A stretch of DNA of 64,000 nt from Heteronotia binoei (lineage: Eukaryota), in the NCBI RefSeq assembly GCF_032191835.1, contig NC_083237.1:21762001-21826000 (forward strand). Direction: 5' to 3'. The notes beneath the pieces were generated by a model, which did not search any database, was not told the DNA's origin, and worked only from the letters and a program-made list of their open reading frames with translations. This document shows, piece after piece, positions 498 through 64,000 of the stretch (its first letter is position 1; each line of letters opens with the position of its first letter). A program made the position numbers and the translations under genes.

Positions 498-622
498 TGG
501 GATGCCAGCCTCCAGGTGAGACATGTAGATCTCCTGGGATTGCAGTTCATCTCCAGACTACAGTTCCCCTGGAGGAAATAGATGCTTTGCAGGGTGGACT
601 CTGTGGTACTGTACCCCACTGA
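498..622 (+). mobile_element. Partial non-autonomous hAT-like MITE (TAGGGTTGCCA-terminus family)
   Basis: Degenerate 5' terminus TGGGATGCCAGCCTCCAGG. Body (ctccagactacag...cagttcccctgga) is shared, in the opposite orientation, with copies at ~23180 and ~40250. Confidence 0.55.
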
Positions 623-697
623 GGCGCATGATCTAGCACAGTTATTTGTTAACATTTCCTTATTGACCACTTGCAGCCCATACCATAACTAAAATCA

Positions 698-21826: not shown

Positions 21827-23179
21827 GACGACCGCCACGGCGACAGCTCCGGCACACACGCGCTACCCCTCCGCAAACAACGGTTTCCAACCGTCTAGGC
21901 CGCAACCGGAAGTGATACCTCCAGATGGCGGAGCACAAGATGGGCTTGGCGGGGGGGGGGGCGTCTGGCGCGCGGGAGTGACGTCACCGACTCGCGGGTC
22001 ACATGACAGGGAGGCTGGCGACAGCAACGGCGCGTTGGAGAGTGCTGAGAGGTTGCCAGGAGACGGAGGCTGATCAGAACTGAAAACATCCGTATGTTGT
22101 TGGACCGAACAAAATCCAGAAAAAGAAACAGTTTGGTGTGCTACCTTTAATTGAGGCCAGTCCAAATGTCACAACAAGGTTCATCAAGTGGTTGTTTTAA
22201 AAATTTAAAAATGGAAGATGAAAAAAGATCAATTTTTCCATATCCACCTCTTAAGACCCCGTCATGCTGGATTCTGTGTTTGTTTCCCTCCAGAATGTTA
22301 TGACCCACCGTTATTTGTAAGGCAACTGCAGAAATCTAACGTGTCCAGCAAAACTGAATCTACTTGTATCCAATGGCTAAGGCTGGCATGACTGTGTCTT
22401 TGAGACCTCGACCTGGAAAATTCGCTTTTTCCTCCGTCATTTTTTATTCTTGTAACATCTGCCTGATGAAGGGCTCTATAGAACTGGGCAGCTTCCCCAA
22501 CATGTCAGTAAAAGGTATTAAATGATTTTGTTTCTTTGAAGAGGTAGGCAATCAGTGCCAAATCAGTGTGGGAGCTGCTGAAGAACATTTTCTCCTCCTG
22601 GAATAAAATGGGTTGCAGACATGTTTTTGACCTACATTGGGAGCTAAAAGTAGCCTTAAAATTTAAAGTGTTTTCCCTTTGGGTTCTGTTAGAAAGAACT
22701 ACCTGTCCTTAGAGGAACTCATCCTGTTCTCCAAGTTTGTTTGTGAGGCAAAAACTCTGTGGGATTTATCCCCAGAACCTTTGTCTGGGAATAAGTCCCA
22801 CAATTAAGACATACTTTCAAGTAAACATGCAAAGGTGCCTCACTGAACTGAGACTAATTCAGAGCAGCAATTCATACAGAGATGCAACAGGCAGCTACCT
22901 CAAGGCAGGAAATCTGACTAAGGTTCTGCTGAGGGGCAACCAAATTATACAGACATGCTCTGTACAGAAATATCAGAGCTGTCAGAGCTCAGCAAAAGGT
23001 GATCAAAAGGCAAACTCAGAGGAGTGATTCATGTGTTAATGTGACAGGCAGCCTTCTTTGTAGGCAAGTCATTCTCTGACGCCTGTATAGGAATGACTGT
23101 GTGATCCAATAATAGTCAATGCAGAGACATAACCCACTTGCCCTACATGAAGACTGTCTGGAAAGAGACAGCAGTAAAA

Positions 23180-40661: not shown

Positions 40662-41153
40662 TAGGGTTGCCGAGTCCAATTCAAGAAATATCTGGGGATT
40701 TTGGGGGTGGAGCCAGGATGCATTGGGGTGGAGGCAGGAGAAACAAGATAAGCATAACTGAACTCCAAATAGAGTTCTGGCCATCACATTTAAAGGGACC
40801 ATGCTCCTTTTAAATGCCTTCCCTCCATTGGAAATAATGAAGGATGGGGCACCTTCTTTAGAGGCTGCTAGAATTGGACCCCCTATTCCAATCCTTTTGA
40901 AACTTGGAGGGTGTTTTGAGGAGAGGCACCGGATGCTGGGCTGAAAATTTGGTGCCTCTGCCTCAAAAAACAGCCCCCCCGGAACCTCAGTTACCCAAAG
41001 AGCAATTCCCTATTATATCCTATGGGAATCGGTCTCCATAGAGAATAATGGAGAGCCCTGTAGACATTTCCCTCCCCCCCCCTCTTTCGGATGACCCTGG
41101 AGGGGCTCAAAATCGGGGGATGCCCCGCCCCCAATTTGGGATTGGCAACCCTA
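40662..41153 (+). mobile_element. Full-length non-autonomous hAT element
   Basis: TIRs TAGGGTTGCC...TGGCAACCCTA; 8-bp TSD GTAGCCAT/GTAGCTAT. Confidence 0.85.
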
Positions 41154-44897: not shown

Positions 44898-47428
44898 TTA
44901 TCTCTCTTCAAGATCTTGAATAAGGAACTTGTTCTTGGCTTTCAAGGCCTCGTACAGCTGATCCTTGCAAGAGCGGTTCCAACTCCGCGTCAGCCTGTAC
45001 AGCTCCCGCATTTTGTCTTGGGTGGTCTCCCGCGAAATGATTCTTTCATACTGATCATCATCCAGGACGCTTCCATGAAGCAGATCCAGAACCGCCTCCA
45101 CGGTGGAAGTCCTCTGGATCAGCTTTTCCCGGTGCTTGTCAATGAAGTGTAACTCCATTGAGCGGGGGTCCCGTGGCCCTGTCAGAGAAAGAACGGAGAT
45201 TTAGGGAAATGGCTTATCAGTTATTTCTTCCTCTCCAGAGCCCTGAGAATCATAGCGTTGTGAGGGGAGGCTAGAGATTCATATGCAGAATTCTTCACAC
45301 CTCACTAAACTACTATTTTCAGGGCTTTTTGGAATGGGAAGGCCATGATGCTTAGAATAGTATGAAATTAATTTGTAATAGGGATAATGTGGCCCAAATG
45401 AATGTGGCAAGAAGGCGTGGGCAGAATGAGACTCAGTGGCTGGTGAACAGCCACACAGTCAGGCTCCTAAACATTAATTGGGGGTGGGGTTGACAGTATC
45501 TGAAGAGACTGGGAGGGCTTACCATAGATTCCTGATGCACCAGAGGAGGACTGCAAAGGCATCTGGACTGAGCCATTTTCACCTGCAAGCGGAAGAGGGA
45601 ACAAGTGAGCACACGTGTGAAACTATAGGAGTGATTCATACTCCAGAATCCTGTCAGAAACACGCTTGAATATTCTGTGTCGTGGCCCATTTAAGCGCAA
45701 TCCCAAATGTGTGAGTCAAATAATCTGCTTAGACAAGAAGAACAGGATAGGAAAAGGGGGCTTTGGAAAGTGCAAAGGACTTCCCAAACTTCAAATCTTT
45801 GGGAAAATTGAAGTTTTTAAAGTCAGGTTCTGTAATTGTTTTACCTTAGGCTCATGGCAATTTGTAGCCTATGATTCTTTGGTGGTTATAGTAAAATCAT
45901 ACTATTTAAGTCCATTTAAACAGCCCCTGGGAGAGGAAATAAGGCAGCAGGAAAGCTGGATGTTGGGAAGCAGCTGTTGGTAGAAAGGGCTCTCAATAAG
46001 TATGAAATAAACCAATTTACATAACGGAGCCTGAGCTGTTTTCTGCTTCTGCTGGAGAGTCCTGTGCCATCCAAAATCTTGACTATATCTCTAATCAACT
46101 ACAGTCAAGGCAAATGTGACAATCACCACAGCCATTTACTGTATTGGTGATTAATGGCTTTTGTGCCAAGCACTGTAGCGCTAAATTCTGGGACGCTTTT
46201 TCAAATAGAGCTCAACATCCTTTGTCGAGAACGCTCCAAGGTGCATATTTTGCACAGTCCTGGTACAGGGATTAACATTTATTCCAGGACCCCAATTAGG
46301 GTAGATCAAAATAGGGTGCCTTGTTAGTCTGTCTGTAGCGGCATAAAAGAGCAAAAGTCCAGTAGCACCTTTAAGACTAGCAACATTTGTGGCAGGGTTT
46401 GTGAGTCACTGCTCACTTCACAAGCAAACCCTGAACTCAGTGCTCTTCAAATAAGGAAATCCAAAGCCAATTTTTTTTAATTCCAAAAAAGTTTAGCCAA
46501 AATGTCTTTAATTGTCTTTCCTTTTAATGTATATTTCTGCAGGAGGCATTTGTGTTCAGTGGAATTATTCGCTCTCCCTTCCCCTCAGCTTCTGCTTTCT
46601 GATGCCCTTTTGCCCAGCCTCTCCCCTTCTAGTTTAAATTTCAAGACAAAGTTTAATCTGATTTCCAGGGGCAATTATTGCCTGACTGCTGGCCAGCACA
46701 ACCACCTGTTTTTTATGACACTCCTGCAGAGGGCAGCTGAATTGGGCAGAAGGGAAACCCTTCATTTCTAAAGGGGGGGGGGGGGAAGTATTGGGTGTTT
46801 AGTGGAAGGTTCAGGGACTGCCTTAAACCAGTGGGGCTACGGGTTTCCCCCCAGCAAATAGTTTTAGTTCACGGAGTTCGTTTACATTAGAAGAACCAGG
46901 CAGTTTCAGGAGATGAAGGGTCAGGCAGGAAACGACTAAACAGGAAAGTGAAAGTAGACCGAGCCATTTCCAGGAACAACCGCTGGGAGGAAAAGGCTTC
47001 TTTGCCCAGTTTTGCCAAGCCGTCCCAAAAGGTTCCTGTGCAGCACCTGCACCGCGTCAGGGAAGGACAGAGAACATTTCTCCCCCCGGCTCCCCCCTCC
47101 CCACCCAGAGGGGGCTGATCAGAGTCAAGCTGACGCCGCCCGTCTCCTTACCGATCCCGGTGACAGAGCGGAGCTTCTCGGCCTCTCGCTTGAGGTGGAT
47201 GCTCTCCAGCACCTGGGCGGCCACCTGCACGGCGTAAGGCTCGGTGTAGTAGCTGAGCAGCAGGTCGCTGAGGTCCAGCACGTCGGCCTTCTGCAGCCGC
47301 CCGCGGGGGATGTTGGCGAAACCCTCCTGCAGCGGGATCTCGTTCAGCTTCCCCTTGAACTTCTTCAGCTGCTCCTCCTCCAGGTCTTCCAGGGCGTCCA
47401 CCAGGTGGTCCCGCACCGTCTTCCCCAT
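44898..47428 (-). CDS. PYCARD: Inflammasome adaptor ASC, 205 aa; exons 47428-47152 (PYD), 45582-45523 (linker), 45178-44898 (CARD)
   Basis: [28 protein letters not shown]...; [18 protein letters not shown]...[14 protein letters not shown]. Three phase-1-joined GT-AG exons total 618 nt. Confidence 0.95.
46944..46976 (+). promoter_or_regulatory. Adjacent ISRE/IRF-E and GAS elements in PYCARD intron 1
   Basis: GAAAGTGAAAGT at 46944-46955 and TTCCAGGAA at 46968-46976. Confidence 0.55.
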
Positions 47429-47850
47429 CGCCGCGGCTCACCGCCCGCTGCAAACAGCGGCGCCACCACCAGCAATGCCTCTTCCTACGACAATGGAGCG
47501 GCGCCGAGAACACCCCCCACCACCAGGGAGGGAGGCTGCGGCGGCTCCGATTGGTGCTGCGGAAGAAGGGGGCGGAGTCAGAGCCCGGAGACCGTCTCGC
47601 TGTCTGCTGAACTCCAGCCCAGACTTGTCGGCTGGCGCTTTCCTTTCCTCTGCAGTTGGAACTTGCAGCGTTTAAGGGTCCGTGGCTGTTGCAAAGACCC
47701 CGAGAGAGAGGCGCTTCTTCGCCCCTAATTCGGACGATTCAGCTGGGGGGAGTGGGGTGGGTGGAGGGCTAGACTGCGGCCCCCTTGGGTGAGTTCAGCA
47801 GGGCTGCTCGGGGGTGGGTGGGGGCTCAGTACCTGATTGACGTGCAGAAG
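47050..47850. promoter_or_regulatory. PYCARD CpG island, possibly bidirectional
   Basis: CpG-rich over exon 1 and upstream; GC box GGGGCGGAG; strong + strand donor GG|GTGAGT at 47788/47789. Confidence 0.65.
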
Positions 47851-48562
47851 GTCCCGGGTTCAATCTCCGAAGTCACCAACGGGGAAACAAAAAAGATATT
47901 CATCTCTGAGTCTTGGAAAGCCGATGCTGCCAGCCGTCGGGTCTTGATAGATTGCAAAATTGCTTAAATGAAGATGTCGGGTTTAGTGGCGGTCGAGCCT
48001 CTGCTTGGCATGCAGAAGGCCCCAGGTCTCCCGTTTAAAGTGAAAGACCTCTGCTCGATACCCCGGTTCAGGAGTCTGAACTGTCTCCCGTTTAAAGTGA
48101 AAGACCTCTGCTCTGCACTGTCTCCCGTTTAAAGTGAAAGACCTCTGCTCGATACCCCGGAGAGCCCTCGGCGGGACACACAATAATTATACTGGCCTTG
48201 TGAGATCAATGGTCTCTGATTCACTAGTCGCGTTCTCAGGTTGCAGTAACCACGCGTAGGTGCAGCATCTGCATGTGCCTGTCTGTTTGTGCCCCCGTAA
48301 GAGTCAAGGCACGCTCAAATTTTGGGAGTGAAGAGGGGAGGGACTTCAAGTGGGGTATGATGCTGTAGTCTGCCATCCATTTTTTCTAGGTGAATTGATC
48401 TCTCTTACCTGGAGACCAATTATAATAGTGGGAATTCTCCAGCCACCACCTGGAGGAGAAAGGTCACTGAAACTTAGGACAACCTCTACCCAAAAGGCCA
48501 CTGTGACCCAAAATAACTACGAACACTGTGCCAATACAACTCGGCATTTTCCTACCCCGGAA

Positions 48563-51500
48563 GTCCTTTTACCCCATGACTCTCAAGCTTTCTAAGGAGC
48601 CTTTGATGAGGAACTTTATCAAAAGCTTTCTGGAAGTCAAGATAAACAACATCTATCGGGTCTCCTTTGTCCACATGTTTGTTCACCCCCTCAAAGAAAT
48701 GTAACAGGTTAGTGAGGCAAGATCTTCCCATACAGAACCCATGCTGAGTCTTCCTCAATAACCCATGTTCATCAGTGTGCCTACTCATTCTGTCCTTGAT
48801 AATGCTTTCTACCAACTTTCCCGGTATTGAAGTCAGACTGACTGGCCTGTAATTTCCCGGATCTCCTCTGGAACCCTTTTTAAAGATGGGGGTGACATTT
48901 GCTACCTTCCAGTCCTCAGGAACGGAGGCAGATTTCAATGAAAGATTACAGATTTTTGTCAGGAGATCCACAAGTTCAACTTTGAGTTCTTTCAGAACTC
49001 TCGGATGTATGCCATCCGAACCCGGTGACTTATTAGTTTTTAATTCGTCCATCAGTTGTAGGACCTCCTCTTTTGTCACCTCAATCTGACTCAGGTCTTT
49101 CAACACCCCTTCCAAAATTAGTGGTTCTGGGGCGGGCAAAAAGTTCTCATCTTCCACAGTGAAGACGGAGGCAAAAAATTCATTCAGCTTCTCAGCCATT
49201 TCCCTATCCTCCTTCAGTAATCCTTTTACCCCATGGTCATCCAAGGGCCCCACTGCTTCCCTGGCTGGTTTCCTACTTCTAATATATTTGAAGAAATTTT
49301 TATTGTTGGTCTTTATGTTTTTTGCAATATGCTCCTCATAGTCCCTTTTTGCCTACATGATCACAGTCTTGCATTTGATTTGCCACAGCCTGTGTTCCCT
49401 TTTATTAATCTCACTTGGACTGGTTTTCCACCGCTTAAAGGAGTCCTTCTTACCTTTTACAGCTTCCATTACTTTGTTTGTTAACCATGCAGGCCTTTTC
49501 TTATGCCTGTTTGTGCCTTTCCTAACTTGTGGTATGTATTTTATCTGAGCTTCTAGGATTATAGTTTTAAATAGTCTCCAAGCTTCCCCAAGGGTTTTGA
49601 CCGTATTTACCTTTCCTTTCAGTTTCCTCCTCACATGCCTCCTCATCTTAGAGAATTTACCCCTTTTAAAGTTAAACGTGGTTGTGGTGGTCTTTTTGGG
49701 CAACTCCCTATTTATACAAATGGTGAAATCAATAACATTATGGTCACTGCTCCCAAGTGGCGCAATCACTTTTACATCTCTCACCAAGTCTTGGGCATTA
49801 CTTAGGACCAAATCCAGGATCGCCCCACCCCTGGTAGGTTCTGAGACCATCTGCTCCATAGCACAGTCATTGAGAGCATCAAGAAACTCAATCTCTTTCT
49901 CTCGACCAGAACACATATTGACCCAATCAATCTGCGGTAGTTAAAATCACCTATTACGACACAGTTTTTATGTTTAGCCGCTATCTTTAAGCCTTCCATC
50001 ATATTATAATCATCCTCTCTCTTTTGATTTGGTGGGCGATAACAAACTCCCATAGTTAAATTTTTTTTGGGCCCTCTATTTCAACCCAAAGCATTTCTAG
50101 AAGGGAATCTAATTCTCTGACCTCAGTCTTACTGGACTGTATATCCTCTCTGACATACAGAGCCACCCCACCTCCAACCCTTCCCTCCCTATTCTTCCGA
50201 TATAACTTATATCCAGGAATCACCGTGTCCCACTGATTCTCCTCATTCCACCAAGTTTCTGAAATTCCCACAATGTCTATGTTTTCTCCCAACACTAAAC
50301 ATTCCAATTCACCAATTTTACTTCGAACACTTCTAGCATTTGCATACAAACATCTATAATTTCTCAGGCAAGCTAGGCCCACCACCTTCCTCCTGCCGCC
50401 TCGAGACTCTGGCAGACAGTCCATACTGTTTGTCACCATCACAGTGGACAACTCTGATCCGTTACCCGGTAGAAAAATAGCAGCCAACCCTTCATCTCTT
50501 TGAGATGAGTCCTCCCGAACCAGAGACATTTCATCTCTTGTCAGCTTTTCCCCAAGATTTAGTTTAAAAACTGCTCTGCCACCTTTTTGATTTTAAGCGC
50601 CAGCAGCCTGGTTCCATCCGGGGACAAGTGGAGACCGTCTCTTTTGTACAGCTCCCGCTTGTTCCAGAAAGCATCCCAGTGCCTAACAAACTTAAACCCT
50701 TCCTCCTTACACCATCATCTCATCCACACATTGAGACTTCTAATTTGTGCCTGTCTCTCCTGCCCTACACATGGAACAGGTAGCACTTCTGAGAGGGCTA
50801 CCTTGGAGGTCCTAGCTTTAAGTCTCCCACCTAGCAGCCTAAATTTTTCCTCCAGGACCTCACGACTGCATTTCCCCACATCGTTGGTGCCAACATGCAC
50901 CATGACCACAAGCTCCTCCCCAGCACTGTCTATCAGCCTATCTACTACACGCGTAATGTCTGCTACCTTCGCACCAGGCAGGCAAGTCACCATACGGTCA
51001 GTACGCGGTTTCGCCACCCAGCTGTCTACTTGCCTAAGGATCTAATCACCAACTACCAAACACCCCCCCTCTCCCCCTGCCCAGGGATGGTTCCTTGGCG
51101 CGAAAGGATTCCCGCTCATCAACCGAAGAAGAGGTCCCTTCTGAGGGCGCATTCCCCTTATCCTCAGCACGGTGCCCTGTTCCCTCTTGACCCTCACGCT
51201 CTCTGGCAGCAACGGGGCTGCTACGTTCAGAGCGGGGCTCATCTAATACACCCCCGAGAGTCTTCTCCAAGTTCCTAACTGACCGTCTCTGCTTCTCCAG
51301 AGCAGTCACCTCGGCCTCAAGGGTACGAACTCATTCCCTGAGGACCAGGAGCTCCTTGCATCGAGCACACACCCAAGACTTCTGTCCTTTGGGCAGACAG
51401 TCGTACATGTGACACTCAGTGCAAAACATGGGAAAGCCCCCACCCCCCTGCTGGCATTCTATCTTCATGATATATATATATTTTTAAAATATACAGTCCT

Positions 51501-51890
51501 CTTTAAATGCTGTTTGTTTAAGTGGCTCCCCTTCTGGAGGGTCAACTTACCTTACTGGGAGAACAAGGAAATTAGGGATCTGGGTTCCTGGTCCTTAGAG
51601 AGCCCCTAGGCGAAGAGCCACAGGCCAAGAGCCCTTTGGCAAGGCGCAGCTTAAAATGCAAAGAGGGTTGAGCAGAGCCACTCCTAAGCAATCAGCAGCA
51701 ATCACTCTCAATCACTTTTACTTTTAGCCCACTCAGCCAAACAAACAGCAGTTCCCCACTATCACAACTCAGAATTTTAAGCAGTCCCACAAACCTCAGA
51801 ATGAAGTCTTTCAAAACTCAGAAATTCTCAGCAACTTCTCCAGCTGTCTCTGCTTTCAGAGCTGCTCTGCTCTGTTCTGCTCTCTCTCAG
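48563..51890 (-). mobile_element. CR1 LINE: 5'UTR, ORF1 (Zn finger/coiled coil/SGNH esterase), ORF2 endonuclease and first part of RT; 3' half missing
   Basis: CTECHMY..CARCKEL, MVTCLPGAKV..VHVGTND, YANARS..ISETWW, KSPGSDGIHPRVLKEL, NYRPVSLTS, YLDFQKAFDKVPH. Several frameshifts and stops; homology ends at ESHGVKG. Confidence 0.92.
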
Positions 51891-51899
51891 ACCTCTGTG

Positions 51900-51959
51900 T
51901 AGGGTTGCCAAGTCCAATTCAAGAAATATCTGGGGACTTTGGGGATGGAGCCAGGAGAC
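51900..51959 (+). mobile_element. 5' fragment of a hAT MITE fused to a FIIND exon
   Basis: TAGGGTTGCCAAGTCCAATTCAAGAAATATCTGGGGACTTTGGGGATGGAGCCAGGAGAC, same family as the copies at 40662 and 63045. Confidence 0.85.
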
Positions 51960-53568
51960 AAGTTCTTCAGTGTGCATGCCGTGGTGATACTTTATCAGAT
52001 TTTGAAGAATATCACAACACTTAACCTCTACTTGGTTCCCAATGACTCTTCCCTGATACAGGTGAGAACCAACAAGATGGGATGCATGCCTCCCCCTGTT
52101 CAGTGCTGGTAGGTAGAATGCAGGGCTCAGGCAGGTGTCTATTAATGGATGACAATCTTGCTGAGTATTATAAATAAAACAGAATCCATTCAAAAAGTAC
52201 ATGGAAGTAAAACTGCTTCTTGGTGCTGGAACTACAATGATGGTCTCAGAAGAAAGGCTGCCAAAAGAGCTCCTGCATGCTCTTTCCACACCTTCTGGGG
52301 CTCACTTTGCAATTCATCCGGAACTAATCATTAGAACTGAGACTGCAGCACACCTGCCTGGGATCACAGAAATGATTCATTCCACAGTCTTAAGAGCCTT
52401 CTACACATTTAAAGGGAGGGAGGGTGCTCCAACTCTGTTGGGAAGAGCTAGAAAGCTCTGGTAGCTGATCTCTCTAGCTGGCCTACACAAGAACATTTCC
52501 CATGTGTGTCTGCACAGAAGAGCATTCAATGACCAACAGTTAAGTGCGACCAGGTTTTCCCTCTAAATAGGCAATCCAGGATGCCGAAGAGAAGTTCCAC
52601 TCAGTGCTGGTGCGAAAGCCCCCTCAAACAATAATGCCCTTGCGCTACGGTTCTCGCTATACCGTATCCAGTTCAGTAGACCTCAAGATAATCCCAAAGG
52701 TAGGTGCATCGTCTTCAAAAATACTTGGGCACCATTGCAATGAAATATGTTTGCAACTCTCCTATTTTGATTGTTCTAATGGTATTCCATGACTTACACA
52801 GAATTGAGAGAGAAGCTGGGGGCTTGGGGGAAGTGAGACTGCTGGTTGACTCTTAATTAATAACATGACATTTTGGGGCATTTATTTTGTGCTCACACAG
52901 TTTAAATGAAGGTATAGTGTCCAGCATTATGAAAATCTCAGTTCAGGGGTTTTTTGTTTTTGTTTTTTTAAATCAAAGGCAGATTTTCAGGCTCAAAGCT
53001 CCGATGTTAGCCTTGAAAGTTGTTGACAGTCTCCAGTGAAATTTCTGGGAGATTCTCAAAAGCAGTTCAAGTGACCTGCTCAGTGGCATGACAAGGGGAC
53101 CAGTCTTTGTTTTGGAAAGCTGCTACGCTTTTAAAGATTATCATTAAGATGTAACTTATCTAAATAAAATACACAAGTTGTGGAGGGACATCAGCCAAAA
53201 TAAAAAGTAGTCCCTACTCCGGGGAGGATAATCCAGATTCCAGTGGTAGGGGAGGGAGGGAGGGGAGAAGCAGGGATAACAAGGGATGGGTGTGAATTTA
53301 TGCAGTTCTATCCTGTTAGCCCCCAAACTCCCCAAGTACTAAGAGTAACTTCTTGATGAACAGTTGGCTGAATTGTTCTTTTATGCTCTTTGTTTCTCCC
53401 TAACTTGATGTCCTCCAATTCTGTATCAGGAACTGCACTTTACTTACAAGAACCCTCGGCAGCAGCAATCCTATGTGCAATTCAGTATCAGAAGCACTGA
53501 GATAGTGGATATAAGTCTGAAAAATAAGGAAGATCTTTGCTCTGTCTGGGACACTTCACTCGAACCAG
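51945..53568 (+). CDS. NLRP1/CARD8-like FIIND UPA subdomain; exons 51945-52061, 52571-52699, 53430-53568
   Basis: The spliced translation MEPGDKFFSVHAVVILYQILKNITTLNLYLVPNDSSLIQ|AIQDAEEKFHSVLVRKPPQTIMPLRYGSRYTVSSSVDLKIIPK|ELHFTYKNP...VWDTSLEP(G) is colinear with the recalled human NLRP1 UPA (FIPVTSVVLLY..HLYLIPSD..AIDDLEMKF..KPP..RYTVS..ILPKELELCY..VWEALVKPG). Splice sites are canonical, phases 0/0/1, no stops. Confidence 0.82.
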
Positions 53569-54442
53569 GTACATCTTGCTGGATTGTGGATTTTTATGGG
53601 GAGGTTAAGACACCCTTGCAGAAAAGTTCACAGATATTACTGTTTCACAAGCATATTGATATAGAGATGTGAGAGATTTGTTGAACTGAATCTCTTGAGT
53701 AGAAGAGTGTGTTGGAAGAGCTCCACTGAACTGTGAGTACTGAACTGTCTTGCTCTCCCAGCTTCCCCAACCTTTGGAGGGTTTATCTTTTCCTTTTTTG
53801 GTAATCCACTGACAGCCCCTGACCTTTGCAGGAATTCCCATTGAGAAGACTGAGGTTCCCAACTTCCCTGTGTTGCTGTTTGAAGGCCTTGCCTAGCGAG
53901 TGCATCTCCTGCAATCCAGCATCTGGTTACTGCAGGGACACCTTACTGCACTTGTGCTCCACTGGGGGATTAGCACCTCGCCATGTGACTGCCTCCTCCT
54001 CTCCTGGTGCCCATTCAAATAATAATGTGTTCAAGTGGTGGAGGTCTGTGTAGCACAGAGGCAGTTACTCACATTAAAAGCTTTAAAATAGTTATTAGAA
54101 AGAAAATGTCCATGTACAGATTCTTAGCACAACAACAGGCTGAGCAATGATACAGAAAAAATATGTAAAACCTGCCATTTCTCTGTCACTCTCTACATGC
54201 TGACCTTATTCTAAGGCAGGCTGCTTAATTTAGAAAGTTAACCATTAAAGCTTCCCATTCCCGTGCGGGTTTTGTTCAGGTCTGCAACCCTCCTGCACTT
54301 TTTTTTTCATTCCACGGCACAATAAAAAAAAAATCCAACTTGAGGCGCACTGGCCAAAAAAATTGGGAATAACCAGCCTTGCAGATGCCCAGTTCGATGT
54401 GTTTGCCGTATGAAAAATACCTGCAAGCAACATACACCTTCC

Positions 54443-57400
54443 TTTTTCTTTTTCTTTTTTTTACTTTCAAACAAATCCTTTATTAACAATTCCATATACA
54501 ATAAAGCAATAACAAACAAACAAACTATACATAGATCATACATACCATACTCAAACCACCACCCACCCTTCCACCCAAGGAGCTTAAGGGGCTTTACCAT
54601 AGCACAAATCTGGTTTTCTCATAATAAATCCCATGCTTTTTATCCATATATATAAATAGTCCTAGGTCTTCCTACAATCTTGTAGATTACCTCCTCTTCG
54701 TCTTACAGTTAATGTGTCCATCTCAGCTGCCTCCAATAATTTCTGTATAAATTCGTCTCTATCCGGTAATTTAGAGACCTTCCAATATTTCGCATAGAGA
54801 ATTCTCGCAACAGTTATTATATGCAATAATATTTTTTTTTCTTGTCTGGATACACTTCCTTTACATACATTTAGCAAGTATAGTTCGGGAGTATGTTGAA
54901 GCCTTATTTTTAATATTTTTTGTGTCCAAAGGTTAATTTGGGCCCAATATTTTTTGGCATATTCACGTTGCCACCAAATATGGTAGAGGGACCCCTTTAC
55001 TTTCCTACATTTTCAACATTTGTTGGAGTACTTAGGGTAGATTTTACTCAGCCTTTCCAGGGTTAAATACCATCGATACATCATCTTGTAAATATTTTCT
55101 TTGAACACTGCTGATTTAGTGAATTTTAAATTTTGATTCCAAATTTTTTCCCATTCCTCCATCTCAACACTATACCCAAAATCCTTCAACCATTTTACCC
55201 AGCTTTCTTTAACTTCACTCTGCATTTTAATTTGTAGGAGCCAATTATAGATTTTCGAAATTAGTTTCTGATTATCGCAAATTATCATATCGAATTCATT
55301 TGGTTTTTTAACAAATCTTACTTCCTTGTCTAGTTGGAACTTAGATTTAACTTGGTTCTTCAGCCACCAATCCAATTTCACATTATCCTCCAGTTTTAAG
55401 TTGTTTTCTTTGTCTAATAAAACTCTATAATTGTAATTGTTTTCCCAACAGTATAAATTGGGTTGGCAAGAGGCTTCTACTGGGGATAGCCAGAGAGGTA
55501 TATTAGGATAGATCATATTTTTAACTTCATTCCAAACTTTGTACAGCGATTTTCTTACTTCATGTCTAAAAAAAATATTATTCCTTGTAGGGGGCAAATA
55601 CCACAAATAGGAATGCCAGCCTCTAACTAGACCTATACCTTCCAATACCAATAACCTTTTATTTTCCAGTGCAAACCAATCTGTTAGCCATACTAAACAA
55701 CATGCCTTATAGTCAGGCAAGGCGAGCCCTCCTCTAGATTTACTGTCTTGTAGTACCTTCAATTTGATTCTGGGTTTTTTGTTTTGCCATATAAATATGG
55801 TTGTCAAGTTATTCAACTGATGAAAGAATGTTTGGGATAGTATGATTGGTATCGTCTGAAATAAGTACAAGATTCTTGGTAGAATATTCATCTTGATGGA
55901 TGCGATTCTTCCCAATAAGGAAATTTGTAAGTCTCTCCATTTATTTAAGTCTAATTGAATTTCTGTTAAGATCTTGTCATAACTATCTTTTTGTAATGTT
56001 TTTAAATCATTTGAGAAGTAAATGCCTAAATATTTGATCTTCTTTTCGTGGCTGAACCCAGATTTCGTTTCTAATTGAGCAATTTCCTCCTTAGTCATAT
56101 TTTGGGTCAGGAATTTAGTTTTCTGGAGATTAACTTTAAAGCCAGATATTCCTCCGTATTCTTCCAGTCTTTCCATCAGATATTCTATCGAAGAAATGGG
56201 GTCTTCTAATATTAATAGCAGGTCGTCAGCATAGGCTCGGACTTTATATTTCCCCCCCTTAATCTTGGTACCTTTAATTCCGTCATCGTCCCTTATTTTT
56301 GTTATTAAGAGTTCTAATGTTAAGATGAAGAGCAAGGGAGATAATGGACAGCCTTGTCTGGTCCCCCGTTCAATTCTTATCGCTTCAGTAAAGTGCCCAT
56401 TAATATTTATCTTTGCACTTTGTTTGGTATAAATGGCTCTCACTAATTTAATAAAAGTCGGCCCACATCCAATAGCCTCCAGTGTTTTAAAAATAAGATT
56501 CCAATTGACGTTATCGAACGCCTTTTAAGCATCGAGGGCAATACCTGCAAACTGCTTCTCAGGGTGTATCCGATAATACTCTAGAATATTCATAAAGAAT
56601 CTTATATTCTGCCTTATAGCTCTCCCGGGAACAAACACCATTTGGTCTTCATCAATGACTGTGGATATAGCCTTTTTAAGTCTGTTAGACAAGATTGCCG
56701 CAAATATCTTATAATCTGCATTTAAAAGCGAGATTGGCCTGTAGTTGCAAATTTCTGTAGGGTCTGTCTCTTTCTTGTGAATCAGCGATATCGAAGCCTC
56801 ACTCCAAGATGGGGGGAACTTAGCTGTTTCTTGTATTTCCTCTATTACGCATTTATAGGGGATCAACAATATCTCTTCAAACGTTTTAAAGAACTCGATA
56901 GGTAGTCCATCAGGACCTGGAGATTTGTTGCTTTTCTGTTTTTTCAGTGCCTCTGTTATTTCATGCATGGTGATGGCACTCTCTAATCCGTCCCACTGCT
57001 CTTTTGTTATTTGCTTGATCCCAACATTCTTGATATACTCCTCCTAGGTTGTTGTGCAATCTCTTGTTTCTTATAGAGATTCTGATAGTAATTTTGTACA
57101 ATTATATTCATTTGAGATTTTTCTGAGATTTCTTCTTTTTTTTTCATTCTTAAGTGATCTTATAGCTTTTCTCCCTTTCTTTTCTTAGTTTATAAGCTAG
57201 CCACCTACTGGTCTTGTTAGCGCTTTCAAAATAATTTTGTTTGGTCCACTTCAGCTTCTTCTCTAATTCTTCAACCAATAATAGATTTATTTCATGCTGT
57301 AGTGCGTAAATCTTGGCTGTTACTTCTTTGGAGTTTTTATCTTTTTGTTGTTTTTTCAATTTCTTTAATTCCGTTATTAAGTCATTATATGCTTTCATTC

Positions 57401-58600
57401 ATTCTTTTTTCCTTTTTGTAGTGTAGCTAATTGCAATCCCTCTAAAAAAAGCCTTGAAGGCATCCCAAATTACTTGCATCGGGGTGTCCTTTTTCAGATT
57501 GCATTCAAAAAACATCTCTATATCTTTCTTTGCCTTCTCGATAAACGCTTCTTTTAAAATTTGCAAATTTAGCGTCCAACGTGTTTTGCGTAGGATATCT
57601 TTCAAAATAATCTGGATTGGGTTATGATCAGCGTATGTTTTAGGATTGATATCTGTTTGGATAACCGACCACCCTAGGGAGGCCGACATCCAGCACATGT
57701 CTAACCGGGACCAACATTTGTGTACATGTGAAAAGTATGTAAAATCCCTTGTTTGTGGGTTTTTCATCCTCCAGGCGTCAACTAAATTAAACTCATCTGC
57801 CATTTTAAAAAATGTCTTTGGCAGTTGGCTCCGGATCTTTTTTGCCTTGGCTTTCTCGTATTTTTTTTCTTTCCCTATATCAAATACAGCGTTGTAGTCA
57901 CCCACAATACAGAAATTCTCCAAACTATAATTCAGCAACTTTTCATGTAGTCTGGCATAAAATTGCTCTTGGTTGTTATTTGGTGCATATATGTTGCCCA
58001 AAATTATTTTATTTCCGTTTATCTCAATTTCTATTACTAAGGTTCTACCTATCTCATCCTTATATAGCAATTTAGATTTTATGTGTTCCTTAACGTAAAA
58101 AGCAACGCCTCTTTTTTTCTTCAAATCACATGAGTAGTAGAGCTATCCTAACTTTTTGTTTTGTAGATATTTTGTATCTCCTTCTTTTATGTGGGTCTCT
58201 TGTAAACAAATTATTTGGGCCCCAGTCTTCTGAAGTTGCAAAAATGTCTTTTTCCTCTTTTTTTGGTTCATTTAGTCCGTTTGTATTAACAGAAAAAATC
58301 TGTAATCCCGCTTTGGTCATCATCTTGTTGTTAAGTTACTATCCAGTATCTTTCTTTGTCCTTTTTGTACTTGTGATCTTGTCTTAATTCTTTCTCTTTT
58401 CTTTTCCTGTAAATCTTTTTTTCCCGGGCTGTTATAATAGGGTTCTTCTCCTTGATCTTCTCCAGAATCGGGTTCTTGACTGTGCATTTCTACATACTTT
58501 TGCCAGAATTCTTCCAACTTTTCTATTGATGTTATATTATGCCTCCTAGTCTGGTAAATGAAGAAGATTCCTTGGACTGTGCAACTGAATAACAACAAAG
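54443..58600 (-). mobile_element. Decayed L1 LINE: ORF1 C-terminus, ORF2 (APE, RT, CCHC), 3'UTR and A-tail
   Basis: SVNTNGLN, GNIYAPN, SRLD, KSPGPDG, NYRPISLLN, GTRQGCPLSPLLF, AYADDL, IKYLG. AATAAA at 54479-54484 (minus) and A-tail at 54443-54462. Multiple frameshifts; 5' boundary approximate. Confidence 0.92.
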
Positions 58601-58764
58601 CTTAAAGAAACCCCTCCCTCTCAGTGTGAACACAAATATCACTCTCTCTGAGGGAGCAGTGTCCCCTTCTCTCAGCTCCTTCTTTGCAGCCTCTTGGATA
58701 GGAAGCTCCTAGGTGATGGTGGTTGTTCAGTTTTTTTAATATCTCCACGGGTTCCACTTCTTAG

Positions 58765-58806
58765 GGAATTTTTCCTCCGGCTCTGCTATGGCCCATGTTT
58801 TCTGTA
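58765..58806 (+). CDS. Candidate 42-nt phase 1-1 linker exon of the UPA gene
   Basis: CTTCTTAG acceptor and A|GTAAGA donor; open (GNFSSGSAMAHVFC). It lies 313 nt before the CARD exon, similar to ASC intron 2 (344 nt). Confidence 0.4.
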
Positions 58807-59119
58807 GTAAGAAATGAAAAGAAGGTACATGGGCTTTTAAAGCAACAAATTATGCGAATATCAATAAACCTGCAAAAGCCTTGCTTTTGGGAAACTCTGG
58901 TTTACACAATTTGTTTTGCTTAGATACAACTTTAACTGTCATGACTTCCTTTAATAAATCCTCGGAATTGGTAGGGTGTTCAGTTGGTAAAAAAAAAAAT
59001 CTGTTGGAAATCTCTAGACTCCTCTCAGTTTCTGTGCTCGATCAAGACATGACTGGAAAAGCCATTTAAGCCAACTGTGATGTGGCGTGTCCCTTAGACC
59101 CCAGTTGTTTCTCTGACAG

Positions 59120-59250
59120 GGACTCAGGCGTCCCTCTCACTGGAGCCTCATTTCATTTAGCAGCACCTGGTGCAGCTGATCCTGAGGACAGCCACAGTGG
59201 ATGGAATTTTGGCTCTGCTGTATGGAGTTGTTCCAGATGAAAAGCAATAT
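59120..59250 (+). pseudogene. Disabled, truncated CARD exon similar to ASC exon 3
   Basis: Acceptor tttctctgacag|GG is identical to that of PYCARD exon 3. (G)TQASLSLEPHFI*QHLVQLILRTATVDGILALLYGVVPDEKQY is ungapped against ASC at 21/44 identical positions; TAG at 59158-59160. Confidence 0.82.
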
Positions 59251-59911
59251 CTCTTTGTTGCACTTCTGAATCACTGTGGTGTGCTGTTTAAAATGTCCGT
59301 ATCGCTTTCTACAATGCCACTCACCCACCCTTCATTGTGCAATCTTCCTTGGACTTTAAAAAAAATGTTCTTCTAAGGTGAGCGCTATAGCACAAAACTG
59401 TCATAGCACTTCAGTGCTCACCTCAAGAGTCTTTTTTAAAATCCAAGGAATATTATGTGGTGGAAAAGGACAGGGGGGAAATGGCACTGTTTGAAATGAC
59501 CATTGCTCTTCAGAGATGGCTCACTGATGGAAAGGAATTTGCTGGATGAAACCCTCATCCCAGTATCGCTTTACTCAAAACCAGGTCAATTACATCTGGT
59601 TTAGAATGCTAATGCATAAAGGGCCAAAGTGGAATACAGCGCAATAAAATATCTAATTTGATCCATATTACCAGCCACAATGTTAGAGAGCTAGTGGGTG
59701 GTGGTGCTCTGCTGCTTGTATTTTCCAAAGCTGTTTCTGGAGCACCTAAAATAAACTGCAAGATGACCCCCTCACTGCTCCTCAGAATCCCAAACAGCAA
59801 GCAGAAGACCTCAACCACAGGGTGGGAGTAAATGAACTGGGACTTCATCCAGAATGACCCCTCATCTATGGCTCTGCCCATCACATTTTCAACCACCTGC
59901 TTCTCTCCTAG

Positions 59912-60007
59912 GGGACCTGGACCAGAACTTTGAAGCGCTTTCTGTAGGAAATCTGAGTGACAGTAATTCTCAAGCTGAAGGGACTCCTGTATCTTCTGAT
60001 GCAGAAG
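59912..60007 (+). CDS. Candidate symmetric exon (GDLDQNFEALSVGNLSDSNSQAEGTPVSSDAEG), gene unassigned
   Basis: ttctctcctag acceptor and AAG|GTAATC donor; 96 nt, phase 1-1, open. Confidence 0.45.
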
Positions 60008-60064
60008 GTAATCAAATAGTGAACATAACTCCAGAAAGAAAAAGGCAGTATGCTCATCAACCAC

Positions 60065-61043
60065 CAGGGCCTTTTTTGTAGCAGGAACTCCTTTGCATAT
60101 TAGGCCACACACCCTTGATGTAGCCAATCATAGAATCATAGAGTTGGACGGGACCTCCAGGGTCATCTAGTCCAACCTCCTGCAATAAATCCTCCAAGAG
60201 CTTACAGGGCTCTTCTTACAGGGCCTACTGTAAGCTCTCAAAGCAGGGGTGGGGAATGTCCAGCCCACGGGCCATTTATAGCCCACAAGATCACTTGGTC
60301 TGGCCCGCAGGGGATAGTGGGGCCGAACTGCATAGTGGCCTCCTCAGGGCCAGCTGGCCGGCAGGGATCACTGGGTGAAACTGTGCAGCAACCTCCCTGG
60401 GGCCCAGCTTGCCAGTTGGGATCACTGCAGGGCCTAGAAGAGTCACAGACGCAGTTCAGATAAGTCCCCCCCCCCATTTCTTTCTTCCCCATTCTCTCTC
60501 TCTGTGGTGCCTGAGTGGTGGGCATTGTGAAGTTGGTGCCTTTAAAGGTCTTGTGGGAGCAGCTGCAGTTTCTTGCATGGAGGAGGGAGGGGTGGAAGCA
60601 CGCTACTACCAGTTCAACTTGCACCTGATTATCCTAGATGGTGTGGCCTAATACACTAACGAGTATGTGACCTAATGTGCTAATGAGTTAATATGCTAAT
60701 ATTAGGGGGTATGTTCTAATATGCTAATGAGTTCCTGCTGGGCTTTTTCTACAAAAAAAGCCCTGACCTTAGACACTTGCCAAGGGCAGTGGGCTGGGGG
60801 CGGGGTGCCAAGTTAGGCTCCCCCCATGTGACTTTAAATAATTTTGCCGGCCTGAATTGTTCTATCTTGGTGGAGCACTGTTTTTTAAGTTGATCATTTT
60901 GTATGGCCCGTGAATGATGTTATAAATATTCAAATGGCCCTTGGCAGAAGTAAGGTTCCCCACCCCTGTTTTAGAGGATTGGCTACATCAGGAGAGTGTG
61001 GCCTAATAAGCAAAGGAGTCCCTGCTACAAAAAAAAAGCCCTG
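60065..61043. mobile_element. Palindromic hAT MITE carrying nested insertions
   Basis: Outer ends CAGGGC..GCCCTG with TSD TCAACCAC/TCAACCTC. Contains a CR1-tail fragment (~60128-60188) and a second hAT element at 60244-60968 (TIR CAGGGGTGGGGAA), which itself carries a MITE end at ~60640-60767. Confidence 0.75.
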
Positions 61044-61915
61044 TCAACCTCAACACTCCATCATGTTCCAGACCATTCGGGAAGCCTGCCCTTTTGTGTT
61101 CCAGAACATTAGATGCTTATGATTCTTAGGCGAAGGTCAGGTGGCATGCTTATCACGTTGTGGGTGCACCTCTAATTTTATCCACGTTTATTTGTTCTGT
61201 AGAGATTCTGTCAGACGTCCCACTCTTCACCTGCTTCACCATTCACTCACCCTGTGGGTGACCATCCAGACCATTGCTGCGTGGTAACCACAGTGCTGTG
61301 TTTCTTTTAAAATTATCACACACGCATGCGCATAAACATTTAAGGTGCTGTTCCACCCCAACAAACGAGAGAGGGGTTTTTTTGGAGGGAGGTTTCCACT
61401 TACGGACAACTGCCCTGGGGGCTCCCAATCCTGAAAGATGGCTGGAGTATTGAAGCGCATCAGCAGTGATGCCGTAGCTTGGGGGTAAGCGACCACTTAT
61501 GTGCACATCACTAACTTGCCTTTTAAAAATGGAGCCAAAGCAGAAAGCTTGACTTTGCATGAAAGCGATCTGGAAATGTGTGATGAGCTGGCAAGATCTG
61601 TAAAGATCAGACTTTATTCGGTGTCAGGAAAGTCAGGGTTGAGAAGGCAGGGCTGATAACTGGTACAGGATACCAATGATGCTGTCTGAACAAGCAATTT
61701 AAATATGGGAGAAGCAATGACACCAGATCAAAAAGCCTGTCTGACCCCAACCTTAATCTGATTGCATCTAATGCCGTCATGTTATTTACATATATGACCT
61801 CCTAAGGAAATAACAGAACAGATTATGTAACTGATCATAGGAGAAAACTAGATGAGCTGGGAGAAGTTTTTTTTTTTTTTAAGAGGACAGACTCTCTTCC
61901 CCTCTCCCCTCTCAG

Positions 61916-61942
61916 GTTATTGCAGCAAGAAGACAAAGGCAG
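61916..61942 (+). CDS. Candidate 27-nt symmetric micro-exon (GYCSKKTKAG)
   Basis: Strong polypyrimidine tract + CTCAG acceptor and CAG|GTTGTA donor; phase 1-1. Confidence 0.3.
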
Positions 61943-62935
61943 GTTGTACATCAAGACTGCATGCAACACTTAAAGCAGTGGGAAAAATTAAGTTTATAAA
62001 GCAGTTTGAGGAAATACTTGAAGGGTGAAGGATGGTGGCAATAAGGAATTTTACAAACAGTGAAGGAGTTATGAGTGGATTAAGAGCTATGATTGGGCGG
62101 CTCACAGTTTACAATGAAACAGCAATAAAAATGGAGTTAAACATTACGTTAAAAGCCATTAAGCTAAAAACAATTCAGGTGCTAATTTCAATACAATTTA
62201 AAGATAGCAAGATGAAACGAGCATTTTAAAGAAAGGAGGAGGGACATCATATGAAAAGGTCAGGGTTTAGGCTTGGAACTAAAACTAAAAGGTGAGGGTT
62301 GGAACTAAAACTCCTGGATGAACCCAGAGCCTCTATGTTGTGACTCTAGGGGGTCCGTTACAACCCATTTTTACAAGCCACGTCAGGCAGCAACAGCAGG
62401 AGATTGTTGAGCCCCTGTTGTTCTGCCATACATGGTTGTTGGGTTGGTTGCATTCACCTGGAAAGGCTGTGCAGGTAAGATCCCATAAACTGGAGACAGG
62501 GGCAAGTGAAAAGACACCTGGTTTTCAGCTGTTCCTAATTCATTTGAACTACCAAGCCAGTAAACTAGGGTTGCTGTCAGCGCAGGGTTCATCGAGGCTT
62601 CAACAATGATAGGACTCTTTTCTTTTGAAAATAAGTTTCATTTATTGAATACACAATGTTACTCATGCAGAAGGTCTTTGAAAGTGATAACATACATAGG
62701 GCAAGCACTAGCCTTTATGGGGGTACATCAAAGCCAGGGGGCTTTAAATCATTCTCATAACAAAGTTGCTTTCTACTTTCTGAGGTGTTTGATTCACACG
62801 CCTGCTATCTTTCTAGCTGGGCCATTTCCACTCCCCCTCTCAGCCGATGTCCTTGTGGCGCCTGGAAAGCGGCGGCGGTGCCTCTCCCTTGCCCTCTGGC
62901 CGTTTATTGCCTTTGGCGCCCAATTCCCTCCTGCC

Positions 62936-62945
62936 TTTCACTTCC
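62936..62945 (-). promoter_or_regulatory. ETS-IRF composite element (GGAAGTGAAA) in a small CpG-containing patch
   Basis: TTTCACTTCC on the + strand, within GC-rich 62830-62950. Confidence 0.35.
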
Positions 62946-63044
62946 CCCTCAGGCATACCTAAGATTCTACTATAGATCACTGGGGTTAGTCCTAAGCAAA
63001 TAAATACTATAGGCAATATAGTTAGTATCAACAGAACACAAGCT

Positions 63045-63531
63045 GACAGTTGCCAAGTCCAATTTAAGAAATATCTGGGGACTTTGGGGGTGGAGCCAAG
63101 ATCAAGGCTATAACAAGCATAATTGAACTCCAAACGGAGTTCTGGCCATCACATTTAAAGGGACGGCACACCTTTTCAATGCCTTCCTTCAATAGGAAAT
63201 AATGAAGGATAGGGGCGCCTTCTTTTGGGGCTCATAGAATTGGATCCCCTGGTCCAATCTTTTTGAAACTTGGGGGGGTATTTTGGGGAGAGGCACTAGA
63301 TGCTATACTGAAAATGTGGTGCCTCTACCTAAAAAAACAGCTTCCCCAGAGCCCCAGATACCCACGGATCAATTCTCCATTATTTTCTATGGGAATAAAT
63401 CTCCCTAGGGAATAAAAGAGTCCCCAGCAGACATTTCCCTCCCCTCCCCCCGCTTTCTGATAACCCTGAAGCGGGGGGAGGGCCTCCAAACCGGGGGATC
63501 CCCTGCTCCCACCTGGGGATTGGCAACCCTA
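63045..63531 (+). mobile_element. Non-autonomous hAT element (same family as 40662)
   Basis: Body colinear with 40662-41153; 3' TIR TGGCAACCCTA; 5' TIR degenerate. Confidence 0.8.
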
Positions 63532-63717
63532 CAGTAAACAGAAGGGAAATGTAACAGAGCATATACCTTTGCCAAGCAAATCCTCGTAATTATTCAAGTG
63601 TGTACCTAGTAAGAAGACTTGCAGCTTTCATTTGTCTTTCTTTGTGGTAAAAGTACCTCTGTCTCCAGCTGCTAAATTTGGATTATGACTGATCTTTCCT
63701 TTGTCATTTATATACAG

Positions 63718-63789
63718 GTCCAAGCAGTCAGGAGGTGAACAGCAATAACAACAGAACGTCATGGTTATTTTCCTGGTTATTTAAATTCT
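63718..63789 (+). CDS. Candidate symmetric exon (GPSSQEVNSNNNRTSWLFSWLFKF), gene continues beyond the window
   Basis: ctttcctttgtcatttatatacag acceptor and T|GTGAGT donor; 72 nt, phase 1-1, open. Confidence 0.45.
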
Positions 63790-64000
63790 GTGAGTTTGGA
63801 ATGACTGTAAAAGATTTGCCCCTCCCTGTAATATCAGGCGAAGGGCTTTTCCCACATTCTCAATTTACTCTTAAGTTTCTGTTTCTTTGGGAGAGGGCGG
63901 TCCTTGTTCCACACGTTTTGTTCCCTGTAGTGGTCAATTCAATATTAAGCAGGTTTATTTCCAGTTTATCTTCCTGCAGTTTAAATCAACAGAGAGATAA

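Follow-up and report, generated by a model that had tools for sequence, protein, structure and literature searches.

UPA exons beside PYCARD in Heteronotia binoei: probable origin as a young, 5′-truncated duplicate of a neighboring CARD8-like gene

In humans, the gene PYDC1 adjoins PYCARD, the gene for ASC, and the CARD-only and PYD-only decoy proteins (COPs and POPs) are expressed, demonstrated inhibitors, each of which comprises a whole interaction domain. In geckos, PYCARD is flanked by a cluster of CARD8-like genes whose products have a (CARD)n-ZU5-UPA-CARD architecture. The proteins of this cluster share the cleavage motif F|SL, which in mammals takes the form SF|SP, and their C-terminal CARD is close to that of ASC. 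In Gekko kuhli, the gene for one such protein (KAL8176569.1, here P0001) is located on the chromosome of PYCARD, about 125 kb off. In Eublepharis macularius, the gene for XP_054848445.1 (P0003) is also found on the PYCARD chromosome, and a related gene (1177 aa) reaches to within 9 kb of PYCARD on its upstream side.

We analyzed a 64-kb stretch of the H. binoei genome, referred to below as the window, which contains PYCARD and, beyond it, a set of UPA exons (Table 1). Window positions 34898-57428 match L004, the PYCARD locus of H. binoei, at 100.000% identity, and the PYCARD exons, recognized by the Pfam CARD (E 7e-16) and PYRIN (E 2e-24) profiles, are 100% identical to H. binoei ASC (P0021). 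The UPA exons begin 4.4 kb from the 5′ end of PYCARD, and much of this gap is taken up by a LINE remnant. The annotation shows no coding gene over window positions 47428-57428, the interval holding the UPA exons. Comparison with the neighboring DNA makes it quite probable that these exons are a young, 5′-truncated segmental duplicate of a nearby CARD8-like gene.

Table 1. Features of the studied stretch (positions in the window unless a contig is named).
Feature	Position	Strand	Description
Studied stretch	CM063339.1:21,762,001-21,826,000	+	Heteronotia binoei, 64 kb
PYCARD (ASC)	44898..47428	-	CARD exon 44898-45158, PYD exon 47153-47428
LINE remnant	48552..50529	-	Endonuclease and reverse-transcriptase ORFs; Pfam RVT_1 E 3e-14, Exo_endo_phos E 3e-6
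Repeat fragment	51903..51956	+	Initial ~55 bp of an interspersed repeat (~500 bp), interrupted at the duplication breakpoint
Duplicated segment	51957..64000	+	Duplicate of the 3′ portion of a CARD8-like gene (CARD-ZU5-UPA-CARD)
UPA exon 1	51957..52061	+	3′ remainder of the ancestral ZU5-end/cleavage-site/UPA-start exon; Pfam UPA-FIIND profile 1-31
UPA exon 2	52571..52699	+	UPA-FIIND profile 33-74; equivalent to human NLRP1 residues 1262-1305
UPA exon 3	53430..53568	+	Phase 1 end; 86% identity to G. kuhli P0001 residues 244-293
Dead CARD exon	59120..59373	+	TAG 59158-59160, second half frameshifted; intronic
Linker exon	59912..60007	+	Intact, phase 1 to 1; AG 59910-11, GT 60008-09

A first-pass annotation had proposed three intact UPA exons (51945-52061, 52571-52699, and 53430-53568), and their AG/GT borders and phases (0/0/+1) were confirmed. 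Their assignment to the UPA of the NLRP1/CARD8 FIIND family is likewise supported by PDB, Pfam (PF23679), and gecko homologue matches. In the PDB search, exon 2 alone matched CARD8 residues 346-387 (E 1.4e-5) and the corresponding stretch of human NLRP1. The exons were searched singly, and against the UPA-FIIND profile (PF23679) exons 1 and 2 gave 21.4 and 25.0 bits, just below the 27-bit cut-off, with collinear matches over profile positions 1-74. The near-identical parent protein P0013, which stood in for the whole spliced 128/141-aa product, scored 83 bits over profile positions 1-116. In comparison with G. kuhli P0001 (residues 170-293), the three exons showed 75-91% identity. Exon 3, the dead CARD exon, and the linker exon, each alone, gave no Pfam or PDB match, and their identity thus rests on the gecko homologues. 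A further, optional exon of 42 nt proposed at 58765 was rejected, as it has a counterpart in no homologue and falls outside the blocks alignable with G. kuhli. The G. kuhli exon encoding P0001 residues 294-324 had no match in the window or in the parent gene.

The claimed absence of ZU5 and of the self-cleavage site was upheld. A tblastn search of both strands of the 64 kb with the lizard ZU5-UPA proteins P0001, P0003, and P0004 returned no ZU5 match at E<1. The parent reads KPKF|SLLGVLIKPLY-DKFF around the cleavage site, while the copy begins at DKFF; UPA exon 1 hence starts with Asp-Lys-Phe-Phe and the 11 residues that follow the F|S cleavage site are missing. The first UPA strand is absent from the window copy. 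Exon 1 is indeed open and in frame from 51945, as had been suggested, but the proposed ATG at this position and the first four codons belong to a repeat fragment, and UPA homology starts only at 51957. Judged from the sequence, it is by coincidence that the repeat supplies the ATG. This fragment is matched at 90-99% by more than 1000 RNA contigs, with loose ends at 51899-51902 and 51957-51960; RNA contig depth over the repeat family is thousands-fold, and further copies of the repeat are found in the window at 40662-41153, 63049-63531, and 31731-31674. A possible splice acceptor at 51902/51903 is located within the fragment.

Alignment of window positions 51957-64000 with the region of the neighboring gene (L006 2108-14149) revealed 99.36% identity, with 63 mismatches and 11 gap openings over 12,050 columns, and alignment against L002 gave the same duplication result. 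The parent gene is on the same strand of the same chromosome, 77.3 kb downstream (CM063339.1, about 21.88-21.905 Mb), and is intact: its N-terminal CARD exon and its ZU5 exons are open, and it has the cleavage site KPKF|SLLG. NCBI splits it into a FIIND-only product (P0013, with Pfam FIIND and UPA-FIIND matches) and a CARD-only product (P0051, with a CARD match); the 90% sequence clusters of these proteins have one member each. P0013 is named “caspase recruitment domain-containing protein 8-like,” and the CARD-only model is named ASC. The alignment of copy and parent breaks cleanly at ...GGA|GACAAGTTC, inside an exon; upstream of this point the window contains the 5′ end of the repeat family and the two 5′ flanks are entirely different. 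The near-identical match includes the introns, the copy is incomplete relative to its parent, and its breakpoint is within the gene, which is the pattern of a truncated segmental duplicate or unprocessed pseudogene. The duplicated segment reaches the end of the window and probably continues beyond it. In G. kuhli, UPA sequence is absent from the 10 kb upstream of PYCARD. As copy and parent differ by 0.5%, vs. 22-25% between the introns of the two species, the copy is younger than the split of H. binoei and G. kuhli.

The exon at 59120 had been taken for the CARD exon of the gene. The reported stop after HFI (TAG) and the AATAAA signals at 59643 and 59750 are present, but the exon is instead an ancient dead one, left out of the gene models in both the parent and G. 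kuhli. It has no Pfam CARD match. An origin as an inverted copy of ASC exon 3 was rejected, since the exon is closer to the real CARD exons of CARD8-like genes (59-65% identity) than to those of PYCARD (55-58%) and is on the + strand, at the same place as in G. kuhli. Copy and parent have the same TAG and differ in this exon by a single 1-nt indel. The orthologous dead exon in G. kuhli (L001 22331) has a lesion of its own, an 11-nt deletion, and shows an intron-like identity of 74% to that of H. binoei; a 13-nt frameshifting insertion is common to both and is found in no real CARD exon. The sequences indicate that this CARD-like exon was already dead before Heteronotia and Gekko diverged.

The predicted end of the product, at the point where the CARD would begin, was not sustained: next comes an intact linker exon, overlooked in the first-pass annotation, and the real CARD exon should be found shortly past the end of the window. 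The linker exon is 71% identical to P0001 residues 325-359 (tblastn) and has zero differences between copy and parent; in the parent model P0051, it is lengthened upstream to an ATG matching window position 59854. The order in G. kuhli is UPA exons, dead CARD exon (skipped), linker, and real CARD, and the window is collinear with this gene to within about 950 bp of its real CARD exon. In the parent, 1,264 bp separate the point equivalent to window position 64000 from the real CARD exon, which is thus outside the window. It is probable that the copy includes this exon as well.

The contrast of clean UPA exons with a ruined CARD exon had been put forward as a sign of selection. This argument is not supported, as the 12-kb segment is only 0.5% diverged and the CARD-like exon was dead before the duplication. 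The UPA exons are clean, and the frame of the copy is open, only because the copy is young and about 0.5% diverged from an intact parent. Three of 372 coding bases differ between copy and parent (0.8%, vs. 0.54% overall), two of them non-synonymous. These are 52644 in exon 2 (G in the copy, A in the parent; Arg vs. His) and 53462 in exon 3 (G in the copy, C in the parent; Gln vs. His), and the synonymous difference is at 53459 in exon 3 (G in the copy, A in the parent). The dN/dS values against G. kuhli are nearly equal in copy (0.24) and parent (0.26), indicating that the constraint seen in the copy is inherited; with few changes (3 in 372 nt), no sign of constraint was detected on the truncated copy itself. 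RNA evidence came from the contigs of one small metatranscriptomic run, and such contigs drop rare variants. The expected junction 52061>52571 was recovered in a spliced contig, the only one found, yet this contig has the parent’s base, A, at 52644. The individual used for the RNA run may differ from that of the assembly, and the A at 52644 is thus no strict exclusion of the copy.

In the light of these data, we consider it unlikely that the copy is a working gene, driven by a promoter that stems from the repeat or is close to PYCARD, translated from the ATG of the repeat, and giving a UPA-only decoy or a ZU5-less UPA-linker-CARD protein that modulates the CARD8-like/ASC inflammasome. Such a gene would agree with the open frame, the canonical splice sites of the UPA and linker exons, and the two AATAAA signals, and the NCBI split of the parent into FIIND-only and CARD-only products suggests that transcripts of this kind may exist in the family. 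Yet, a neutral copy at 0.5% divergence would show an open frame too, the sole splice evidence has the parent’s allele, and the annotation calls no gene at the UPA exons. Moreover, no such copy is present near PYCARD in G. kuhli, the ATG belongs to a repeat fragment, and the first UPA strand is missing. The UPA-only decoy variant would draw on the dead CARD exon together with the poly(A) signals of that exon.

It is also improbable that a parent haplotype was falsely duplicated or misjoined during assembly and that no truncated copy exists beside PYCARD. A divergence of 0.5% would fall within the inter-haplotype range; on the other hand, the window contains no N and the junction is in continuous sequence, the 5′ flanks are entirely different with a clean breakpoint within an exon, and at least 54 kb of other sequence separates the copies. 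More doubtful still is a copy that retains the real CARD and is transcribed from the repeat or PYCARD-proximal region as a ZU5-less, pre-“cleaved” UPA(minus first strand)-linker-CARD, acting as a constitutive seed or filament cap. If so, the product would escape restraint by ZU5 and DPP9, and a CARD8-like/ASC regulator would be newborn. That the UPA exons form the 3′ part of a larger gene with ZU5 exons spliced in from elsewhere is hardly credible: with the possible acceptor at 51902/51903 the frame would stay open, but neither strand of the 52 kb upstream has any ZU5-like sequence, the upstream space is taken by PYCARD and the LINE, and the break at 51957 physically severs the ancestral exon.

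The young pseudogene, which the first-pass annotation had kept as a fallback, is favored by the 99.36% copy, the intra-exon breakpoint, and the parent-allele RNA. The alignments show that at least 12 kb was copied, from a point midway through the exon for the ZU5 end, the F|S self-cleavage site, and the UPA start. The copy is placed 4.4 kb upstream of PYCARD and is joined to a truncated interspersed repeat. The three UPA exons, the old intronic dead CARD exon, and the linker exon were carried along, whereas the cleavage site, the ZU5 exons, and the N-terminal CARD stayed behind. Such a copy would have no promoter of its own and may be an unexpressed or barely expressed fragment heading to decay. 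Hence, the copy is probably non-functional and most likely represents a young gene fragment, not a new inflammasome regulator. As a counter-point, its UPA exons, splice sites, and linker are intact and an in-frame ATG is present, so that a product could be made.

As it stands, the finding matters little and adds one more partial duplicate to a fast-evolving innate-immunity gene cluster. It does call for caution in two respects: where a near-identical parent is close by, a contrast of clean exons with a broken neighbor is not in itself a sign of selection, and a dN/dS value measured against a distant relative (here 0.24) reports only the parent’s history. Duplication in the gecko CARD8-like cluster can yield ZU5-less UPA-CARD fragments and, if expressed, a ZU5-less fragment would be a natural test of free UPA-CARD action.

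Among known systems, the H. binoei parent (P0013 and P0051) is the closest, with the same exon structure and with UPA, dead CARD, and linker exons and introns 99.4% identical to those of the copy. The parent, however, has an N-terminal CARD, ZU5, and the F|S site, whereas the copy begins 11 residues past the cleavage, behind a repeat fragment. G. kuhli P0001 and E. macularius P0003 belong to the orthologous family, with UPA identities per exon of 75-91% and 62-81%, respectively, and with an exon order collinear with that of the copy, which in G. kuhli extends to the skipped dead CARD exon as well. Both are full-length (CARD)n-ZU5-UPA-CARD proteins; in contrast, the window copy is devoid of everything upstream of UPA residue 12. 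The UPA is also common to the copy and to the FIIND of human CARD8 and NLRP1 (PDB 7jkq, 6x6a, 6x6c) and rat NLRP1 (7crv). Compared with the human proteins, the copy has no ZU5, self-cleavage site, or neo-N-terminus for DPP9, and no CARD was found for it in the window. In relation to COPs and POPs, to which the first-pass annotation had likened it, the copy is far younger, the one spliced RNA contig has the parent’s allele, and no sign of constraint was seen; its likeness to them, e.g., to PYDC1, is that of a partial inflammasome-gene duplicate beside ASC.

All three UPA exons proposed in the first-pass annotation were recovered with their coordinates, AG/GT borders and phases intact, and combined they give an open frame of 128 codons. 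Among solved structures, exon 2 alone matched human CARD8 residues 346-387 (E 1.4e-5), rat NLRP1 and human NLRP1 1262-1305, while rat NLRP1 UPA residues 16-47 aligned collinearly but weakly with exon 1. On the Pfam UPA-FIIND profile (PF23679), exon 1 occupies positions 1-31 and exon 2 positions 33-74. A search of a representative library with exon 2 as query returned P0001 from Gekko kuhli (453 aa, ZU5-UPA-CARD; 91% identity over exon 2), P0003 from Eublepharis macularius (1097 aa; four CARDs, then ZU5-UPA-CARD) and FIIND proteins from Varanus and Pelodiscus. With these relatives, tblastn on both window strands gave four matches only: the UPA exons (P0001 residues 170-293), a broken CARD exon, the PYCARD CARD exon and the stretch 59911-60015 (P0001 residues 325-359). 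The reported absence of ZU5 also held, as P0001 residues 1-169 had no match at E<1 in the whole window on either strand.

Positions of the exons and neighboring features (window coordinates unless a locus or protein is named)
Feature	Position	Strand	Borders and phase
UPA exon 1	51945-52061	+	AG/GT borders, phase 0
UPA exon 2	52571-52699	+	AG/GT borders, phase 0
UPA exon 3	53430-53568	+	AG/GT borders, phase +1
Intact linker exon	59912-60007		AG 59910-11, GT 60008-09, phase 1 to 1
PYCARD	CARD exon 44898-45158; PYD exon ending 47428	-	
LINE remnant (endonuclease + reverse transcriptase)	48.5-50.5 kb		
Tandem N-terminal CARDs	L001 5326-9168; L002 695-985; P0003 residues ~365-690		
CARD exon comparison	44947-45198 vs L001 25638-25888		

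The UPA exons belong to a duplication, 12 kb or longer, that is cut short on its 5′ side and abuts a repeat fragment beside PYCARD. The window PYD exon matches H. binoei ASC at 100% identity, and 34898-57428 matches the locus of that gene, L004, at 100.000%, which places the window at CM063339.1:21,762,001-21,826,000 (assembly GCA_032191835.1). P0001 residues 170-453 as query returned two H. binoei proteins, the paralogue P0012 and P0013 (221 aa, "CARD8-like"), the latter two residues off the window UPA translation and encoded 77.3 kb further along on the same strand. The locus of this parent gene is 99.36% identical to window 51957-64000, the copy, through the last window base (12,050 alignment columns, with 63 mismatches and gaps opened 11 times); the sequences 5′ of 51957 bear no relation to each other. 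At the breakpoint the parental sequence runs ...KPKF|SLLGVLIKPLY-DKFF, where the window is repeat until GGA|GACAAG. The N-terminal CARD exon and the ZU5 exons are all open in the parent, which also has two small exons; the parent's real CARD exon (L006 15413-15691) begins 1,264 bp past the base matching window 64000. NCBI splits the parent into two models (L002 10001-13231, L006 10001-15694): P0013, FIIND-only, reads on past UPA exon 3 and ends within the following intron, and P0051 (144 aa, CARD-only, named 'ASC') starts within the intron that precedes the linker exon. These are either fragmented gene models or genuine separate FIIND-only and CARD-only transcripts. The gene called next (L006 25073-25694) encodes 757 aa, in which Pfam recognizes P53 and, weakly, a CARD; this odd domain pair may reflect a fused gene model.

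In the G. kuhli locus L001, which encodes P0001, the order is two small exons, a ZU5 exon, an exon with the ZU5 end, F|S and UPA start, two UPA exons, a small linker, a CARD-like exon skipped by the model (22331-22435), a linker and the real CARD exon (25656-25946), with three more CARD exons upstream. Window 51958-64000 is collinear with L001 13974-24708, so that the window ends ~950 bp (G. kuhli scale) short of the real CARD exon; L001 13974, equivalent to 51958, falls inside the ZU5/UPA exon. The exon set first proposed was incomplete, in that the match at 59911-60015 is an intact linker exon, overlooked at the time, downstream of the "ruined CARD exon".

That CARD-like exon, from 59120, reads G-TQASLSLEPHFI and then the expected stop (TAG 59158-59160); its later half shows no CARD resemblance, and the AATAAA signals were found at 59643 and 59750 as claimed. 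H. binoei and G. kuhli have in common a frame-shifting 13-nt insertion that none of the compared real CARD exons, whether CARD8-like or PYCARD, contains. The H. binoei TAG is GAG in G. kuhli, which has its own 11-nt deletion. Identity of the dead exon is 59–65% with CARD8-like real CARD exons and 55–58% with PYCARD CARD exons. The exon died long ago; between the two species it is 74% identical, close to the figure for introns (75–78%) and not to the 84% of the real CARD exon. Copy and parent differ at three coding positions, 52644 (Arg/His), 53459 (synonymous) and 53462 (Gln/His); exon divergence is 0.8% vs. 0.54% for the whole segment, and the dN/dS of 0.56, from three changes, is uninformative. 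Against G. kuhli, dN/dS is 0.24 for the copy and 0.26 for the parent, a constraint inherited from the parent's history. The contrast of clean UPA with ruined CARD, previously read as hinting at selection, is more simply explained by a young copy carrying an old dead exon.

The ATG lies within 51903-51957, the first 55 bp of a ~500-bp interspersed repeat, and is thus an accident of the junction; other repeat copies read GTG there (loose-end consensus). Further copies occur at 40662-41153, 63049-63531 and 31731-31674. Expression data came from the contigs of one run, a small metatranscriptome, in which over 1000 contigs were 90–99% alike over the repeat fragment, with loose ends at 51899-51902 and 51957-51960. 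The repeat starting GGTTGCCAAGTCC... (51400-51960, 40662-41153, 63049-63531) was very abundant in this run; summed contig depth reached ~67,000 over 51800-51999. A contig of 171 nt, at depth 3, links 52061 with 52571 across GT..AG and extends 8 nt beyond 52699/52700, departing from intron sequence. This contig carries A at 52644, the parent's base, and so documents splicing of the parent and not of the copy. Contigs of this run never extend over 51957 into exon 1, annotation leaves 47428-57428 without a gene, and P0013 and P0051 each stand alone in their 90%-identity cluster, hence no near-identical protein annotated from the copy. All these results count weakly against its expression.

We infer that the copy probably has no promoter and is not a working gene. 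The active species of NLRP1/CARD8 is the UPA-CARD once freed; the ZU5 fragment restrains it, as does DPP9, which binds the new N-terminus. A ZU5-less UPA-CARD minus its first strand, such as a working copy might yield, could in principle be constitutively active or a cap; a working copy is improbable and finds no support among the present results. An assembly artefact is just as improbable, and splicing to ZU5 exons located elsewhere is very unlikely.

CARD8-like genes share the PYCARD chromosome in all three geckos examined. The distance from PYCARD is 82 kb to the H. binoei parent and ~125 kb in G. kuhli, also head-to-head; in Eublepharis 9 kb separate PYCARD from the end of a CARD-FIIND-UPA-CARD gene (1177 aa) upstream of it. 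UPA sequence is absent within 10 kb upstream of G. kuhli PYCARD, which makes the truncated copy specific to the Heteronotia lineage. A 37-bp tandem repeat (48075-48150; 2.1 copies, 97% match) has the PYCARD promoter region on one side and the LINE on the other. Beyond the PYCARD 3′ end, a minus-strand gene called to ~38340 (L004 19089-22531) has a 631-aa product without a Pfam match. P0012 (162 aa, annotated 'ASC'; L003 10001-18371, 21.95 Mb) has half a UPA spliced directly to a CARD; its model is probably incomplete, since 9.4 kb upstream there is a ZU5/UPA exon (L003 235-513). CARD8-like C-terminal and PYCARD CARD exons are 70–77% identical in DNA and 58–62% in protein, and this likeness is why NCBI names CARD-only fragments 'ASC'. 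At the N-terminus, 5′ of ZU5, the CARD8-like genes of geckos have between one and four CARD exons in tandem; mammalian CARD8 has a disordered N-terminus instead. CARD8-/NLRP1-like proteins are reported from every vertebrate clade surveyed but lamprey (PMC11258412).
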